A stretch of DNA of 64,000 nt from Piromyces finnis finn (taxonomy: Eukaryota > Fungi > Neocallimastigomycota). A model generated the notes under the pieces. It had not been told where the DNA came from, did not search any database, and saw nothing but the letters and a program-made list of their open reading frames with translations. The position numbers and the translations under genes were made by a program. Location of the stretch: NCBI GenBank assembly GCA_002104945.1, contig MCFH01000020.1, positions 744,001 to 808,000 of the forward strand, read 5' to 3'. Shown one piece after another: positions 26,015 to 42,420 of this stretch (positions are counted from its first letter, which is position 1; every line of letters starts with the position of its first letter).

Positions 26015-29000
26015 ATGAGTAGTGGTAAAAGTCATAAATCTTCAAAAAAGACACCTTCTAAGAAGATGTCAGTATATTCAATGGTACCAACTCTTTTTAT
26101 TCTTGAACGGCCTAGTCCTTCAAAGTATTTAAATCCTTCACGGCCTATAAATAATCGTAATACTTTTTTTTTATTATATTTAAAAATTACTAATTTAAGA
26201 TTTTATTTATTTTATTAATATATTATATTTATTAATTTATATGTAATAAAATAATAATAAAAAATTTTTTTATGAATATGTTAAAAAACATATTTTATTA
26301 GAAAAATTACATCCACTTGCAGAATCATATACTCCTTCAAATGATGAAAATTTAATGGTAGATAAAAAGTTAAATAAATCTAGTAGCATTGAAAACATAT
26401 TTGGTGAATCAGAACAAAGTAGTTATAAATTAACTATTACATCCAATAATGATGAAATAGGTTCTTCTATTGGAAAAATTGATGGACATTTAAAAAGAAA
26501 TTGTGGTTTAGAATTAACAAGTAAATAGTCAAAACTATTATAAGAAAGTGCTATAATAAAAGTTTTATAAAATATTTCAAAAATAAAATATTAATATATA
26601 TATATATTTTCACAAAACATATTATACTCATCATTATATCTATAATTATTAAAATGATTTATCTTTTATTCATCATTGTTATATTATAAATTACTACATA
26701 AACATTGTTCAATGTTGTTGTTGTATTATAGTGGAAGAAAATAAAGATGAATTAGAAATTAATATAAAATTTGCAACAAGATGCCTTATTAGTTCTTTAA
26801 ACATTGAGTTTTTAACAACTATTGGAAAACCAAAAAAATTATATACCCCTCGTTCAGCCAAAACATCTAGAGAATTTTCAAAATGTATGATAGTAGAAGA
26901 ACAGGAATCAAGTTCAGATAATTTCGTTGGTGGTGAAAAAGATACCGTAAAATTAAATACAAGAAAAAGAGTTAGTAAGGTTCCAACAATAGAAACAGAT
27001 GATATACAAAATTCATCAAATTTAAATGATACACTCAACTCAATTGATGATCGTTTTAAAGATAAAAGTTTCAATAGAAATTATAATCCAAGAGTTAGCA
27101 ATTTACGTCATTCTCCTTCAAAATCCAATAAATCAGAAAGAGTATATGTTCCGTTAAATGATATTAATGATAATATTGAAGAAGATGATGAAGCTCAAGA
27201 TACATTGGGTGAATTAAAATGTAATAATGATTGTATACCATTTCCATCATTAAGTCAAATAACATCCTTTGAACCCAAAGTACCGCCGAATACTCCATCT
27301 GATGATGATAATGATACTATTCCTTTCCCATCTTCAAATACTAATATGGAAAAGACAGAATCTTTCCCATCTTCTAATTCTAGCAAAATTGAAGATACTA
27401 TACCGTTACCATCATCAAATAATGAAGAAGATTCAATACCATTCCCATCTTCAAATAATGAAGAGAATTCTATTCCATTTCCAACATCTAATAATGAAGA
27501 GAATTCTATTCCATTCCCAACATCTAATAATGAAGAAAATTCTATTCCATTCCCAACATCTAATAATGAAGAAAACTCAATACCATTTCCATCCTCGAAT
27601 AATGAAGAAAACTCAATACCATTTCCATCCTCGAATAATGAAGAAAACACCATACCGTTCCCAACATCAAATAATGAAGAAAACACCATACCATTCCCAT
27701 CTTCAAGTAGTGAAGAAAATTCAATACCATTTCCTTCTTCAAACAATGAAGAAAATTCAATGTCATCATCATCTTCGAACAGTGAAGAAAATTCCATTCC
27801 ATTTTCGTCTTCAAATACAAAATCTAATACATCAAATCTTAATCCACGTTCCAGTTCTGTTCCTAAACAAAAACCTATATTAGAAAAGAAAATAAACGGT
27901 GGCAGAAAAGGAAGAAGAAGATCTATTAGTAGTCCACCACCACCCTTCCCTGATTTAAACACAACATTAAATCTTTCATCTAGTGACAATACAGAGAGTG
28001 ATGTTCTTTGCCATTTACGTGATATTGATGTTCAAGTGACTTATATGAAAGGTTATTCATCCTATACTGTAAGTTTTAATTATTATATTATTTTTATTAT
28101 TAGTATATATTAATTATTAATATGGAATTAATATATTAAATCAAAGTAAATTGAATTTTAAAATTAATTTATTATTCTTTTTTTTTTTTTTTTTATATTT
28201 ATAGCCTCAAGTAACACAAGTATCAAGAAATTTAATGAATTATGATAATAAGAATGCAGCAATGAAAGACAAGGAAACTAAAGTATTAATTTATGAATTC
28301 CGAATTATTGGTATAGCAGATGGTGTTAATATAAAAATTAAGAAAATTTTGGATCCTTTAGCTGAACCAGTAAATGTTTGAGTTTATTTTCTTTCTTTTT
28401 TTTATATATGAATATCATTAAGCACACATAATATTAATGTATTAATAATCTTTATCCAAAATAGACAAGGTTAAATCTTGACCCATTAAAATTAATTAGG
28501 ATTGCTGGTGTTAATGTTTATGCATCTCCTCAACCGAAGATGGTAATGCCATTAATGAATATGGTATCTTATATGGAAGTAAGTATATAATTGTATATTA
28601 AAATATAATAAATAAATAATTATAAAAATTAAATTAAATTATTTTTATTTTTTTTTCATCGAGATTAATAATCATCCAAAAACAGATATCATAGATGCTC
28701 ATATTTTATTAGGTTTAGCATTACATTCTTCACATAAAAGTGTTCAAGGCATTGAAATAATAAATAAAGCATTAGTAAGCATAATATAAATTTTAATATT
28801 AACCTTTAATATCACTATTTCAACTCATATTGATTTAATTTATTGTTTTGATTAGGATATTATAAAATATTTATTAACTTCAGGAGAAGTCTTCAAACAA
28901 TCTAATATGACATTTCATAGCCATTTAGCACAAACACCATATACTATAACATCAAAATCCGAAATATTTTTATATGTATATTTTATTCATATTTAATAGT

Positions 29001-32000
29001 ATTTTAATAACTCATAATATTGTAAAATTAGAATAATCCAGTTTTTAATATTTATTATTATATATATTCTTTATACACAAACAACTAATGTAGACTCTAT
29101 CTCGAATGGCAAAATTAGAATCATTAATTGCAGAAATGGAATATGTTAGAACTAGAGAAAATGAATCAATTCCACATTTTATAGAAATATCAAGATTATG
29201 GAAGTTTTACTTAAAGGCACAAGATTTTGATGACAAAAAAAAGATTGACGAAATCATCGTTCAAATATTTAAGACACCAAAAGAATACGACCCACTATTA
29301 AGTCGATTATCTAGTCCTGCAGAAGTAATTTATAATCTACATAATTTACCAGATTTTTTCTTATTTGTCTTGAATGATAATCGTGATCCAGCAATTTATT
29401 TTAGATCAATGAGTTTAAGTGCAATTCAATTTATTATTGATACATCAGGATGCAGGTAATATATATTATATCTTTATTGTTGTTTTAATTTTAATATTAT
29501 TAATTTATGTATAAATTTATCACTTTTATTAATCATTATAATATCCTTAATTCTGTAAACAATTTAACAACAACAATAACAATAGTGTTGGTTCAGAATA
29601 TTCAAAAATTTGTCAACATTTATTTCTTAATTATTCATTATGGGATGATAATCAGCAATTAAATGATCAATCATCAGATATTGATGATAATAGTAACAGA
29701 AAAAGTATTGAAAATACTCCATTAAGCATGACATTTGAACGTGGTGGTTGGATTAATCAACTTTTCTATGTATTAGAATCGTGTTATAAACTTATACCAG
29801 AATTCTCTAATGAAGTATTAAGAGAATTTATAGAAGAATGGGCTTTCCCTGCTGCGGTTGCATTAAACCGTACTCAAGGAGTAAATATAAATAAACACAT
29901 AAAAATATCTTAATTTTTATCAAATAATTCGATTAACACATTTATATATGTTTATTTATATTTTAAAATATATATAGGCAATTATTCAGCTTTATAGATT
30001 TTTATGTTCAGCCTTCCTAAATATTGAAGGTTATGATATTTTAATATCAAACCCATTTTTAGATGCTGTCATTAGTGATTTAATCGGAAATGGAACTTTA
30101 AGTATTGCCGCAGGAAGATTTTGGGCTGTTTTAGTCGAAAAGACTTTAAATATCCTTTTATATTATTATTATTAGTATTATTGTTATATCTAATATTTTA
30201 TAAAATCAGTATTTAATAATTTGATTTTTTAGATTTAATAAAATTATTTCTTAACAAATATGTTTACCTGTTATAGAAAAGCATAATACAGGCTTAATTC
30301 TTAAGTATGTTACAGATAGAATTTGCCAAATGTTATGTGATGAAACAAGCGTCATTGAAGGCGAAATTTGCCTTTTATTAGATATTATTTGCCGTATTGC
30401 CAGTAAGGTTAAAAATATAGAAGATGATCCATTAAAAGATGAAATTGCCTGTAGTTTTGTCACTGTATCTGGTGTGTTATTAGATACTTTTGAAATAAGT
30501 GTAAGCTTTTTCAGAATATAAATATCAATTATTTAGATAATCAAGGAGATATTTTAAATTTATCAATGATAATTAATAATTATTATGCATATGTATATAG
30601 ATTATTGATAGATATCCAGATATGTTTGTTACTCTTTGGCAAACATTTAGACTATCTGTTGAAATTATACCTCAAAATTTCAAAGGTGTTGTCGCTCAAG
30701 CTATTGCGTCAGTACTTCGTAATTTTACAAAAAAATTAAATGGTAATTTTTTGTAATAGATGATATAACACATCTTATTTCAAAGATATAATAACCATTA
30801 AATACAATAAATAATTAATTCAATAAATAATTAATTTTTTTTAATAACTTCTTTTAGATTGTGCACCAACACCAAAAGCTACTAAAGCGTTATATAATAT
30901 TTTGCGTTATATTCAACCAGACGATCAAATTTTACAGTTGGCTATAGAATTGTTACCACCATTTAGTCAGGTATTTCATCCATTACTATTGTTAAGGATA
31001 AAATTAAAATAAAAAACATTAATAAAAGTATCTAATTTTTTACTTTGTCTTTATGTATATTTATATAATATAGTCCATACCACATAGTATAGATAGTCAT
31101 CAATTAGATGTATTAAGAGAATTAGTCATTATAAGTTCAAAAGCAATTAAAGACAGAAAAATCATGGAGGAAATGATTAATGCTTTATTTGATAAGTTTA
31201 CTGTTCGAAGTGAAAACTTTGAAAGAACATTAAGATTCTTAGCATCTCTTACTTTGACAAGATTAACACCAACAGGTAGATACTTTAAAAATAAAGCAAT
31301 ATGGAAATTCGAATGGCTTGAATGGGTTTTAGAAATTTGTCTATTTGAAAATCTAATTCCAGAAGGAAGTAAATTTTATAAAAAGATTTATTATTATTAT
31401 TATACACAATTTTATTATAATTCTTTATTAATTTATCTTTTTATTTTGTAATATTATAATAAAAATCTTTATTATTATTTTATATTAAAATAAAGTATTT
31501 TCATTGGATACTGTAAATGATTCAAAGGGATTAGAAACAACAAATCAATTATTCATTGAAAAATTAAAGTATTTAAAATCATTAATTTCCATATTGAAGC
31601 CATATCATGTTAAATTAAACTTTGAAACCATCAATTTAGAATCTTCATTTATCACCCGTTATAATGATATAGCTGGATGTTGTTTCTTATTATTAGGTCA
31701 TCCAGATATTCATGTTATATGTTTAGCATACGAAATAATGGTTGGTATTTCAACAAACATTATAAGAATCAACTCCATTCGTAATTATCCAAATGATAAG
31801 TATGCTATCTCTTAATAATAAATAAATTTAAAAGTAATAATCAATGTATAACATTTTCTTTATTTATTTTATAAATTAGTCTTCTTAACGTATTAGAATA
31901 CTATCCAACCTTTTTAATTAAAACTTTAAAAAGATTCCTTCATGATAAAGAAATGGTTCTTTCTTGCTTAAGTGCTATCATCTGGATGTATCAAGTAGGC

Positions 32001-33479
32001 TTTGGTTTTATTTTACTAATTGGTATTTAATAATAAATATTATTTTTTATTCTAAACTTATTTTTATTACTTTTACAATAATTGCACTATTAGACTCTTG
32101 GTGAGATAGAATTAACTGACGAAGAATATACCAAAATATACCCTGAATCATTGTGGGATGTATGCATAAATGTACTAAAGAGTCCATTCCGTGAAACTTC
32201 AGCAAGATCTATTGATTTAATTAGCGTAATATTCAATTTCGTTAATATACAGGTAAAAAATTAGTTAACATTTAATTTAAAGATTCTTTTTTTTTTTTTT
32301 TTTTTTTTTGAATGAAAATGTAAATAATGATTTTATTTATAATAAAAAAATATTTTTTTTAATATATTGTTATTAAAGTTATTATCCACAAGAGGATGGA
32401 AAGGAATTAATGTAATATTACTCTATCTACTTAACCATGGTTCATGGAAAAGACGTTTAACTGGAATAAAACTACTGTATATCTTGGCTAGAAGATGGCC
32501 AACATACATTCATCCTCATGAAGATCTTATTGAAAGAACAAAAGAAGCTCATGAAAGAGTTATTGTCCTTCAAGGTAACTTTAAAATAATATAACATTTA
32601 TTATAATTAAAAATAATAATTTTAAATATATATTATAATGGATAAATTTGATTAATTTTTTTTTACTATTAATGATATACTATAGATGATGGTCGTGATG
32701 CTGTTAGAAATGCTGCAACACATCTCTTTTTAATGTATAATTCCTCTGATATTACAGAAATATCAGAATTATTAATCGAGCCACCGGATTTAAAAATTAT
32801 TCCAATATCTATGGTCCCTCAATTTGCTTTACCAGAAATTCCAAGTGAAGATGGTGTTATTAAATTGGCTCTTGACTATCATGATGAATGTGAATCTCCT
32901 AATATATTTAATTTCTGTGATCATCCTAAACGTATTCCAAGTTACTTTGAAATTGATTTGGGTTATTATCAATATGTTGAACCTCTTGATTTAGTATACG
33001 AATGTCCAGAAATTGATATAGCGTAAGCTTTTATATATATAATAGATTATTGTAGTAAGATTATTAACTTTTCTTCCCCTTTAATATGCTGGATATTATA
33101 TTACTCATTATTATAGTAGTACTCCACAAACATTAAAAGAATTTACTGAATTTCCATCTGAAGAATTTTATATTAATTATATAATGGAAAAGAATAAGGT
33201 AAAAATTATAGGACACAACAATTTTTTTTTCAATATTTCAATTTTATTATATTATAATTATTAATTAATTTTTGCTATTTTTAATATTAGTTGAGATGGG
33301 TTATTTTGAATGAACCTCAAAATACAGTTGAACAAATAGAATATAATTCAGGGGAGGTAATAATGATACTTGTTAATTATAATATATCTTTTTTTTTTTT
33401 TTTTCACTTTAATTAAATTTTCTTAATATATATGAAATATATATAGAATATTGATGAATTTGATGAGTTCACTGAGTAA
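26015..33479 (+). CDS. Large uncharacterised protein: disordered N-terminus with 12-aa tandem repeat, then a long alpha-helical (HEAT/ARM-like) region; about 20 exons, one U12-type intron
   Basis: Exons can be joined in phase from ATG 26015 to TAA 33477-33479. All introns are GT-AG except an AT-AC intron at 30150-30267. The C-terminal part has amphipathic helical segments (e.g. LLNHGSWKRRLTGIKLLYILARRW, DDGRDAVRNAATHL) typical of HEAT/ARM solenoids. I do not recognise the family. Confidence 0.75.
27388..27819 (+). repeat. Coding minisatellite: 12 x 36 bp, unit EEN(S/T)IPFP(S/T)SNN
   Basis: Twelve consecutive 36-bp units in ORF 26731-28113, plus 2-3 degenerate copies upstream (DCIPFPSL, DTIPFPSS). 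Units differ mostly at synonymous positions; units 3-5 and 6-7 form near-identical sub-blocks. Confidence 0.95.
30150..30267 (+). other. U12-type (minor spliceosome) AT-AC intron, 118 nt
   Basis: 5' end ATATCCTTTT (30150-30159), branch site TTTCTTAAC (30247-30255), 3' end TTTAC (30263-30267), branch A 13 nt from the 3' end. Removal joins A|CT in phase 1, giving ..FWAVLVEKTLTVIEKHNTG.. and deleting an in-frame TAG (30173-30175). Confidence 0.85.
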
Positions 33480-39700: not shown

Positions 39701-42420
39701 GCAATATTAAGAGAATGAGAGAATTGGAAGATGAAATCATTGATTTAAAAGATCAAATGTCAGATCAAAAAGATATAATTGATAAATTAAGATCTGAAAA
39801 TTCCGATCTAAAAGCAAAAATGACTACTATTGAAATTATTTATCAAAGTTTACCATCTGCTCTTGCTGCTAATCGTCATTTTACTGTTGATAATTTAGAA
39901 AAAACAATTAAACTTTTAGTGGAAGATAATGAAGAACAGTTTAAACGTATTAAGAACTTAAGTAAAGATAATCAAGATATAAAAAAGAAACTTCGTGAAG
40001 CAGAAGCAGAAAATGAAATGCAACAAAAGAGAATGAATAAAATGGAAAAGCAAACTCTTCAAAGCCTTCGTTCTCCAATATCACCACGTTCTGAATCATT
40101 AAAGAAAATTGCTGGTGGTGATTCAGATACCCAACAATTAAAGGTAGAAGTTTGCAATTTGAAAAAGGAGATATTTGATCAAGGTAATGAAATTTCACGA
40201 TTAGAACGTGATTTAAAGCTTTCTCAAGGTCAAAATAATGATATGAAGAATGATTTGAATGAAAGTAAGAATAGAGAAGAAAAGTATAAAAAGGAAGCTA
40301 AAGACTTGGAATCTGAAATTAGAAAGGTTGAAGATGACTACAAAAAGGCTAGAGATGAAGCCGAAGATCAACGTATTAAGATCGAAACTCTTAAGAATCA
40401 TATCAGTGAATTAGAACGTGAAGTGAACAGCAAAAAGTTAGCCCAACGTTCTGCTTCTGATGAGTTAAGTTCTAAACGTCAAGAATTATTAGATACAGCC
40501 GAAGATCTTAACGCTCTTCGTGAAGAAAATAAAAACTTAAAGAAAAAATTGAAAGAAGCGACAGGTGAACAAAGCCAACTTACTAGAGATGTTTCTAAAA
40601 ACAATTTAGAATTAGGTGAATATAAATCAAAATACAATAAGATACAAGAAGAATTTGACCAATTAAATAGTAGATATGAATCTCTTCAACATGAATTAGA
40701 GGATGTTAAGTATGAATTAGAAAGCGAAGAAGCTAAAACAAAGAAATTAAGAGAAACAAATAATACTCTTCAAGAAAAATACGATACACTTTTAATTGAA
40801 AAACAATCACAAGAAAGAGGAAATAATATCGATAAAAAGAAGCAAAATGATCAATTAGCCGATGCTGAAAATAGAATTCTAAGTGTTAAGCATGAACTGA
40901 ATAAGGTTCAAGAAGAATTAAATGATAAGAACTCTCAAATAAGAAAAGCAGAAGATAATGAAAAGAAATTATTAAGAGAATTAGAAGATGTTAAGATGGA
41001 CTACAAATATTTAAAGGATGAACATACAACTATGTCAGATGCTCACTCTAAATTACTTGACGAACAACTTTCCATGAAACGTAAATTAGAAGATATGAAA
41101 AATGAAAGAGACGAATTTGAAGAAAATTGTAAACGTCGTTTCAAAAATGAAATTCGTGACCTTCAACATGCTCTTCAAGATGCAGAAGATGAAGTTGATC
41201 AACAGGCTATTCGCGTTAAAGAATATCAATCAAAATATGAAGATGAAGTTAATAATTCAAAGAGTCTTCGTGATGAATTGGATAGTCTTAAGCAAAATGT
41301 TGCTTCAGCTAGAAACTTGATGAATGATACACTTTCCAACAAAGAAAAAGAATTAGAAGAAGCCATTAAAAAGGTAAAGGAAGCTGAATCTAAATCAGGC
41401 GATTCTCAATTAAAGGTAGAAAATATGGAAAAATTAGTTGAAGATATTCAAAACCAATTAACACGATCTGAAAATGCATTAGTTGATTTCAAAGCAAAGT
41501 CTTTCCAAGAACGTGAACAATTCCAGGAAAAGATTGAAAATCTGAACCAAAAAGTAAAGGAAGCTGAAGAGAATAATAGAATGTTAGAAAGAGATCTTAA
41601 AGAATGTCGTAAGAAGGCTAATGAACAAGAAGAAGAATTATCTCACTCAAATAAGGAAATTGACCGAATTATAGAACAACATGAAAAGGATATGAAGTCA
41701 CTCACTGATTCTTATCAAAGTATGATTGATGATTTAGAAGAGAAATTATCCGAAGCTGAATCAATTCGTGATAAATTAGATGATTTAGAATTCAAATATC
41801 AAAATGAAGCTGAAAAGTGGAATAGATCAAAGAGTGATTATGAAAAGGAAATATTAGAATTGACTGAAGAACAAACTCAATCTAAGAAAAAATTGGATGA
41901 TCTTCATAATGAATTAATGCAAGCTCGTCAAAGAGATACAGGAGCCACTTTTGATGAAGTTCAAAATCTTAAAGATAGAGAACAAACCTTAACCGAAGAA
42001 TTAAAAAAGAGAGAAGAAAGAGAAGTAAGATTGGAAGCTGAATTAGAAGCTACTTTGAAGGAATTTGAAAGACTTACAATGAATATTGCTGATTTCGAAG
42101 GAGAAAAGATGAAAATGAATAAATTGAATAAAGAACAAAAAGAAGAAATAGAAGATCTTCGTAAGAAGTTACAAGAAGCCACAGTAGATAACTTAGGTAG
42201 TAAAGTTGCAGCAAATGCTACAGCTAGAACTAAGGAACAAACAATGCGTAATGAATTTAGAAAAATGATTCAAGAAGTTAGAGAAGATTATCAAAAGCAA
42301 TTAAAGAAAGAAAGTGATCGTAATAATGAATTAGATCAAACAATTAAACAGATGAAACGTGAAAAGGATATGATGTCTTATCGTACATGTAATATTGGTA
42401 CTCAAACCAGTATCTATTAA
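36774..42420 (+). CDS. Uds1 (up-regulated during septation 1)-domain long coiled-coil protein with N-terminal Arg/Asp-rich mixed-charge region
   Basis: Exons 36774-36779 (ATGGCA), 36863-36922, 37432-38398, ~38549-38685 and 38832-42420 join in phase. YILKKESFEIIQDKIKRYTDQISSIKSKLQSESSIQESVINI..AKEKLSSTNRKLDKLAADL..DYFSHIVGV follows the Uds1 domain pattern; about 1000 aa of heptad coiled coil follows. The two tiny 5' exons are less certain. Confidence 0.72.
37759..38040 (+). repeat. Coding GATAGA-type (Arg-Asp) repeats with a 3 x 24-bp unit (SRTIDRER)
   Basis: agtagaacaattgatagagaaaga-like unit at 37813, 37837 and 37861, followed by runs of GATAGA/GACAGA. Confidence 0.9.

Follow-up and report, generated by a model that had tools for sequence, protein, structure and literature searches.

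The segment at positions 30150-30267 of the window, by which we mean the whole 64-kb stretch of Piromyces finnis DNA analyzed here, is in our assessment an AT-AC intron of the U12-dependent (minor-spliceosome) class, with a probability of about 93%. It is a genuine, textbook example of its class and ordinary for this genome. The intron lies on the plus strand, is 118 nt long, interrupts its gene in phase 1, and contains 11% GC within a window that has approximately 20% GC throughout. The upstream exon (29978-30149) ends in ...SIAAGRFWAVLVEKTL (...VEKTL) plus one base (a), and the downstream exon (30268-30500) starts with the ct that completes the codon for T before reading VIEKHNTGL...EIS. Both sets of boundaries agree with the translation and with cDNA matches. 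Removing the intron restores the frame through the split codon a|ct, as the original prediction had proposed. The same prediction held that the unspliced upstream exon runs into a stop codon with no in-phase GT donor after its last codons, and direct reading of the sequence bears this out: GT is absent from 30149 to the in-frame TAG at 30173-30175.

The splice signals are those expected of a U12-type intron. The 5' splice site ATATCCTTTT (30150-30159), read directly from the sequence, opens with the donor ATATCCTTT (30150-30158), which agrees with the U12-type consensus at 9 of 9 positions and fits the pattern /[AG]TATCCTT. The branch-point box TTTCTTAAC (30247-30255) matches TTCCTTAAC at 8 of 9 positions and places the branch A at 30254. 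The 3' splice site AC (30266-30267) was read from the sequence, and its register was taken from the cDNA alignment. The branch A lies 13 nt before the last base of the intron (30267), within the expected range of about 10-20 nt, and the intervening sequence, CAAATATGTTTAC, contains no polypyrimidine tract between the branch A and the AC. The positions and motifs proposed beforehand (the start at 30150, the branch box about 100 nt farther on, the terminal AC ending at 30267, and the 13-nt spacing) were all confirmed by direct reading together with exon translation.

Taken alone, U12-like motifs are not rare in a genome of 20% GC. RTATCCTTT occurs 4 times in the 64-kb window, against 3.4 occurrences expected, and in Markov simulations a donor, a branch box, and a suitably spaced 3' end arise together about 0.29 times per 64 kb when both strands are counted. 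The remaining ATATCCTTT matches in the window, at 41693, 42371, and 55694, are all on the minus strand, and those at 41693 and 42371 fall in the apparent antisense of a coiled-coil coding region. Because the motifs alone do no better than chance, the case for the intron rests on their exact placement at cDNA-defined exon boundaries and on comparison with related sequences. As a side observation, ATATCCTT is also found at 29541-29548, within another intron of the host gene, which is of the GT-AG type (29456-29585). This copy is accompanied by no branch box, takes no part in a cDNA-defined splice, and illustrates how frequent chance donor motifs are.

We searched JGI metagenome contigs with the back-translated downstream exon, which led to three loci (L005, L006, and L007) and a set of four cDNA-like sequences, two of them being copies within L007. 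When aligned to the window by BLAST, these contigs show every exon of the host gene in order and zero introns, indicating that they are cDNA-derived. At approximately 84% DNA identity to the window, they belong to other species. In the DNA alignment, L005, L006, and L007 lack exactly 29881-29977, which is a GT-AG intron, and exactly 30150-30267, the latter being missing from L005, L006, and both L007 copies. All four orthologous sequences thereby join their exons precisely at the equivalent of 30149|30268, where the junction reads ACTTTAA|CTGTTATAG, which is the splice that the original prediction had drawn from the window's letters. Every cDNA-like contig that we found is spliced at this point. 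The P. finnis transcript itself is probably also spliced at 30149|30268, judging from the junction seen in these relatives. We also counted substitutions codon by codon over 60 nt of joined exon, and across these 20 junction codons (30101 to 30278) the four cDNAs differ from the window by 24 synonymous and 0 nonsynonymous changes, a pattern that points to purifying selection on the flanking codons.

One of these sequences, L007:382-4983, is an uninterrupted 1,533-aa open reading frame (ORF) that is colinear with the window exons. L007 as a whole is a hairpin chimera, the second half of which is a reverse copy of another variant of the host mRNA that is joined at the equivalent point. The contig in question, Ga0307903_100004 (L007:4983-7144), consists of two cDNA variants of the host gene arranged head to head and looks like a transcriptome-assembly artifact that could mislead gene callers. 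A spurious 770-aa minus-strand ORF is present on it in the ORF listing.

The cDNA comparison bears directly on a different reading of the locus, in which the major spliceosome uses an in-phase GT-AG pair and the U12-like motifs are a chance product of AT-rich DNA. The GT-AG alternative named in the original prediction, 30102-30276, does exist on the plus strand, as does a second in-phase pair, 30134-30281, that encloses the AT-AC intron. Both pairs keep the frame, the U12-like donor occurs in the window about as often as chance predicts, and a public Neocallimastix lanati gene model uses the equivalent of 30134-30281. We nevertheless consider GT-AG splicing here very improbable, since the residues that these pairs delete are kept in all four cDNA-like sequences and in four of five homologous proteins, and since the deleted codons show synonymous change only. 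Splicing at 30102-30276 would delete 19 conserved residues and turn the next E into K, and we rejected this pair as the true intron on the same grounds. Splicing at 30134-30281 would delete VEKTLTVIEK.

The N. lanati model is itself informative about the AT-AC intron. All 157 of its 157 residues that align with the L007 cDNA are identical, yet it lacks exactly those 10 residues, VEKTLTVIEK, which is the product expected if a GT-AG intron equivalent to 30134-30281 had been drawn around the AT-AC intron. Because the 10-residue gap is the sole difference from a cDNA that is 100% identical, we interpret the model as a prediction artifact. A further implication of the gap is that an intron is present at the equivalent place in N. 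lanati, and this one mis-drawn model suggests that the AT-AC intron may be conserved in other genomes. In the Anaeromyces robustus model, as in three JGI proteins, this stretch reads ...RFWAVLVEKTLTVIEKHNTGL...; the A. robustus model has the correct junction. The expectation that gene finders confined to GT-AG introns would mis-model the locus was thus borne out by N. lanati, although through the equivalent of 30134-30281 and not through the pair 30102-30276 that had been named. The description of the gene as unannotatable was overstated, as relatives carry full-length public models of hypothetical proteins, including the correctly joined one of A. robustus. The intron matters mainly for annotation: it settles where two exons of a gene conserved among gut fungi are joined, and the N. 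lanati model provides a concrete case in which GT-AG-only prediction silently dropped 10 conserved residues around a minor intron.

The host gene has a coding span of 26015-33479 on the plus strand with about 23 exons, and the 1,533-aa L007 ORF maps exon by exon to 26028-33479. Placing the cDNA on the window located 18 introns exactly, 17 of which are GT-AG introns and one of which is the AT-AC intron 30150-30267, the 11th of roughly 20 introns in the gene. The 17 GT-AG introns are 80-211 nt long and start mostly with GTAA or GTAT. No sequence that matches TTCCTTAAC with at most one mismatch is present in any of the 17, whereas the AT-AC intron has one. It could be argued that the window copy is an unspliced or decaying gene that agrees with the related cDNAs only as a relic of its past. 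We regard this as scarcely credible, as every exon of the 1,533-aa ORF is matched in order, the translated exons are open, all placeable splice sites of the gene are intact, and the 20 junction codons differ from the cDNAs synonymously only.

Sequence searches returned homologs of the host gene only from Neocallimastigomycota, the anaerobic gut fungi. The full-length relatives are hypothetical proteins of N. lanati and A. robustus and some JGI models, which are 94-100% identical over residues 480-1500. An exhaustive search of representative sequences with the 77-aa downstream exon found one ORF fragment only. Pfam gave no match to ten exon translations or to the full cDNA ORFs, and a PDB sequence search gave none either; the exons of the window gene were searched one by one. 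Leads from the ESM Atlas toward a HEAT/INTS7-like identity were rejected because their scores were below 0.9, under the level that is meaningful. An AlphaFold2 model of residues 481-1533, built from six near-identical sequences, consists entirely of helices at a pLDDT of 43.5, which is too poor for a fold search; the predicted product, a protein of roughly 1,500 aa, is thus described as all-helical with low confidence. The long third exon contains a coding tandem repeat at 27400-27817 (36 nt × 11.6 copies, 85% matches) with a 12-aa unit of the IPFPSSNNEENS type. This stretch is missing from the L007 cDNA, so the repeat copy number appears to vary between species.

By the measure of these searches, the host gene appears to be conserved, to lack a named family, and to be restricted to anaerobic gut fungi. 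Because it was found only in this group, the intron could represent a lineage-specific gain of a minor intron, as opposed to an old intron whose host gene has changed too much for its relatives to be recognized. Minor introns are gained very rarely, and we consider such a gain unlikely.

A U12-type intron requires its own spliceosome, and the original prediction had accordingly claimed one for this early-diverging fungus and proposed a genome search for its snRNAs. We ran covariance searches with Rfam models on the window's own genome (56.46 Mb, 232 contigs), which recovered all four minor snRNA genes, each at one locus. U12 (L001; 66.6 bits against a gathering score of 53) and U6atac (L002:1501-1649, G000:C112:211500-211648; 52.1 bits against 33) score above their gathering scores, while U11 (L003:1382-1615, G000:C152, about 317395-317628; 38.2 bits against 39) and U4atac (L004; 49.2 bits against 53) fall just below. 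The branch-binding box of U12, AGUAAGGA, is intact, and the branch box TTTCTTAAC is complementary to it with one G-U wobble. The 5' end of U4atac is complementary to stem II of U6atac (-27.1 kcal/mol versus a shuffled mean of -10.7), and, when compared with their human counterparts, these two RNAs show compensatory changes in the pairing.

The U11 gene is about 234 nt long and has a canonical 5' box, stem-loop III, and an Sm site. The 5' splice site ATATCCTTTT pairs with the canonical 5' box AAAAAGGGC (L003:1382-1390). AU-rich expansions separate the 5' box (AAAAAGGGCTTATG, L003:1382) from stem-loop III, which accounts for the score just below the gathering score, and the covariance alignment extends over no more than the final 115 nt of the gene. 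A U11 without a 5' splice-site box, that is, without the GG that pairs with C5/C6 of the donor, was considered and dismissed as an alignment artifact, the canonical box lying approximately 120 nt upstream at L003:1382. SNORD14-like and SNORD12-like matches, both below their gathering scores, are located approximately 550-930 nt downstream of U11 on the opposite strand (L003:2162-2548).

Searches for protein components were more mixed. A CCDC84/CENATAC-like gene was matched over the cutoff by three colinear exons (L013/L014; G000:C112:739085-740745, minus strand). CENATAC is a minor-spliceosome factor that, in human cells, is linked with introns of the A type (AT-AN). A single CHHC zinc finger of the zf-U11-48K type was found, a domain that also occurs in other proteins and is not diagnostic. 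PDCD7 and zf-SCNM1 had no match in six-frame, exon-by-exon searches, and neither had a match in any control genome. A strict genome-wide pattern identified two further ATATCCTTT...TTCCTTAAC...AC introns, compared to zero in the controls. The first (L010:415-513; G000:C1:668714-668812) joins long open frames in phase 1, seemingly in an importin-like helical-repeat gene, and the second (L011:437-555; G000:C90:482336-482454) joins long open frames in phase 0 in an unnamed gene.

The 5' splice-site box of U6atac has the sequence GCCGA in place of AAGGA, which makes for poor pairing with AUAUCCUU. We first entertained and then rejected the notion that this is an oddity or a loss, as GCCGA is the published "CC variant" (PMC2396436). 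This [GU]CCGA variant was described in 2008 from cnidarians, Acanthamoeba, Physarum, oomycetes, and others and was called hard to explain, and the same work lists the fungi Rhizopus and Phycomyces with the AAGGA form (PMC2396436). Here, the CC variant is present in a fungal lineage, and the introns nevertheless keep ATATCCTTT.

The variant box has a bearing on whether the intron could instead be removed by the major spliceosome as a U2-type AT-AC intron. Species with a CC-variant U6atac splice canonical U12 introns (PMC2396436), which argues against that reading even though the one U6atac of this genome has no AAGGA box for pairing with the 5' splice site. The minor snRNA set of the genome is complete, and the 13-nt spacing and the missing pyrimidine tract are textbook features of the U12 class. 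Rare U2-type AT-AC introns do exist and share their AT-AC termini with 30150-30267, but neither the ATATCCTT donor nor the TCCTTAAC branch box occurs in them, and both are present here. We therefore give removal by the major spliceosome very little credence and favor a U12-dependent intron, the removal of which would be carried out by the minor spliceosome.

The splicing steps that we propose for the U12-dependent intron are taken from the established minor-spliceosome pathway. The U11/U12 di-snRNP would bind at two sites: at AUAUCCUUU, the 5' splice site, by way of AAAAAGGGC in the 5' box of U11, and at the branch box UUUCUUAAC by way of AGUAAGGA in U12, which would bulge the A at 30254. U4atac/U6atac.U5 would join after the di-snRNP, and excision between 30149 and 30268 would then produce ...VEKTL-T-VIEKH.... 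That the intron is rate-limiting, as had been suggested, is speculation.

Larue & Roy (2023, NAR, PMC10639083) have published minor introns and minor snRNAs for Neocallimastix californiae as well as P. finnis, in agreement with the minor spliceosome claimed for this group; the text passages reporting them do not name individual introns. As far as those passages describe the published set, 30150-30267 has the fungal group, the intron class, and the minor snRNA set in common with it, and its donor, branch box, and spacing are canonical; its host gene has no named family. It adds one textbook instance to the minor-intron set already published for P. finnis and opens no new question, as such introns and their machinery are on record for this fungus. 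Outside the fungi, the intron resembles the canonical AT-AC U12 introns of animals, exemplified by the human P120/NOP2 intron and the suppressor genetics quoted in passages of PMC4980772. As in those introns, the AUAUCCUU donor presents C5/C6 to G6/G7 of U11, a UCCUUAAC-type branch box faces U12, and the branch A sits close to the 3' end. In contrast to the animal introns, the branch box here has T for C at one position, which forms the G-U wobble with U12, and the U6atac that serves this genome carries the GCCGA CC-variant box, not AAGGA.
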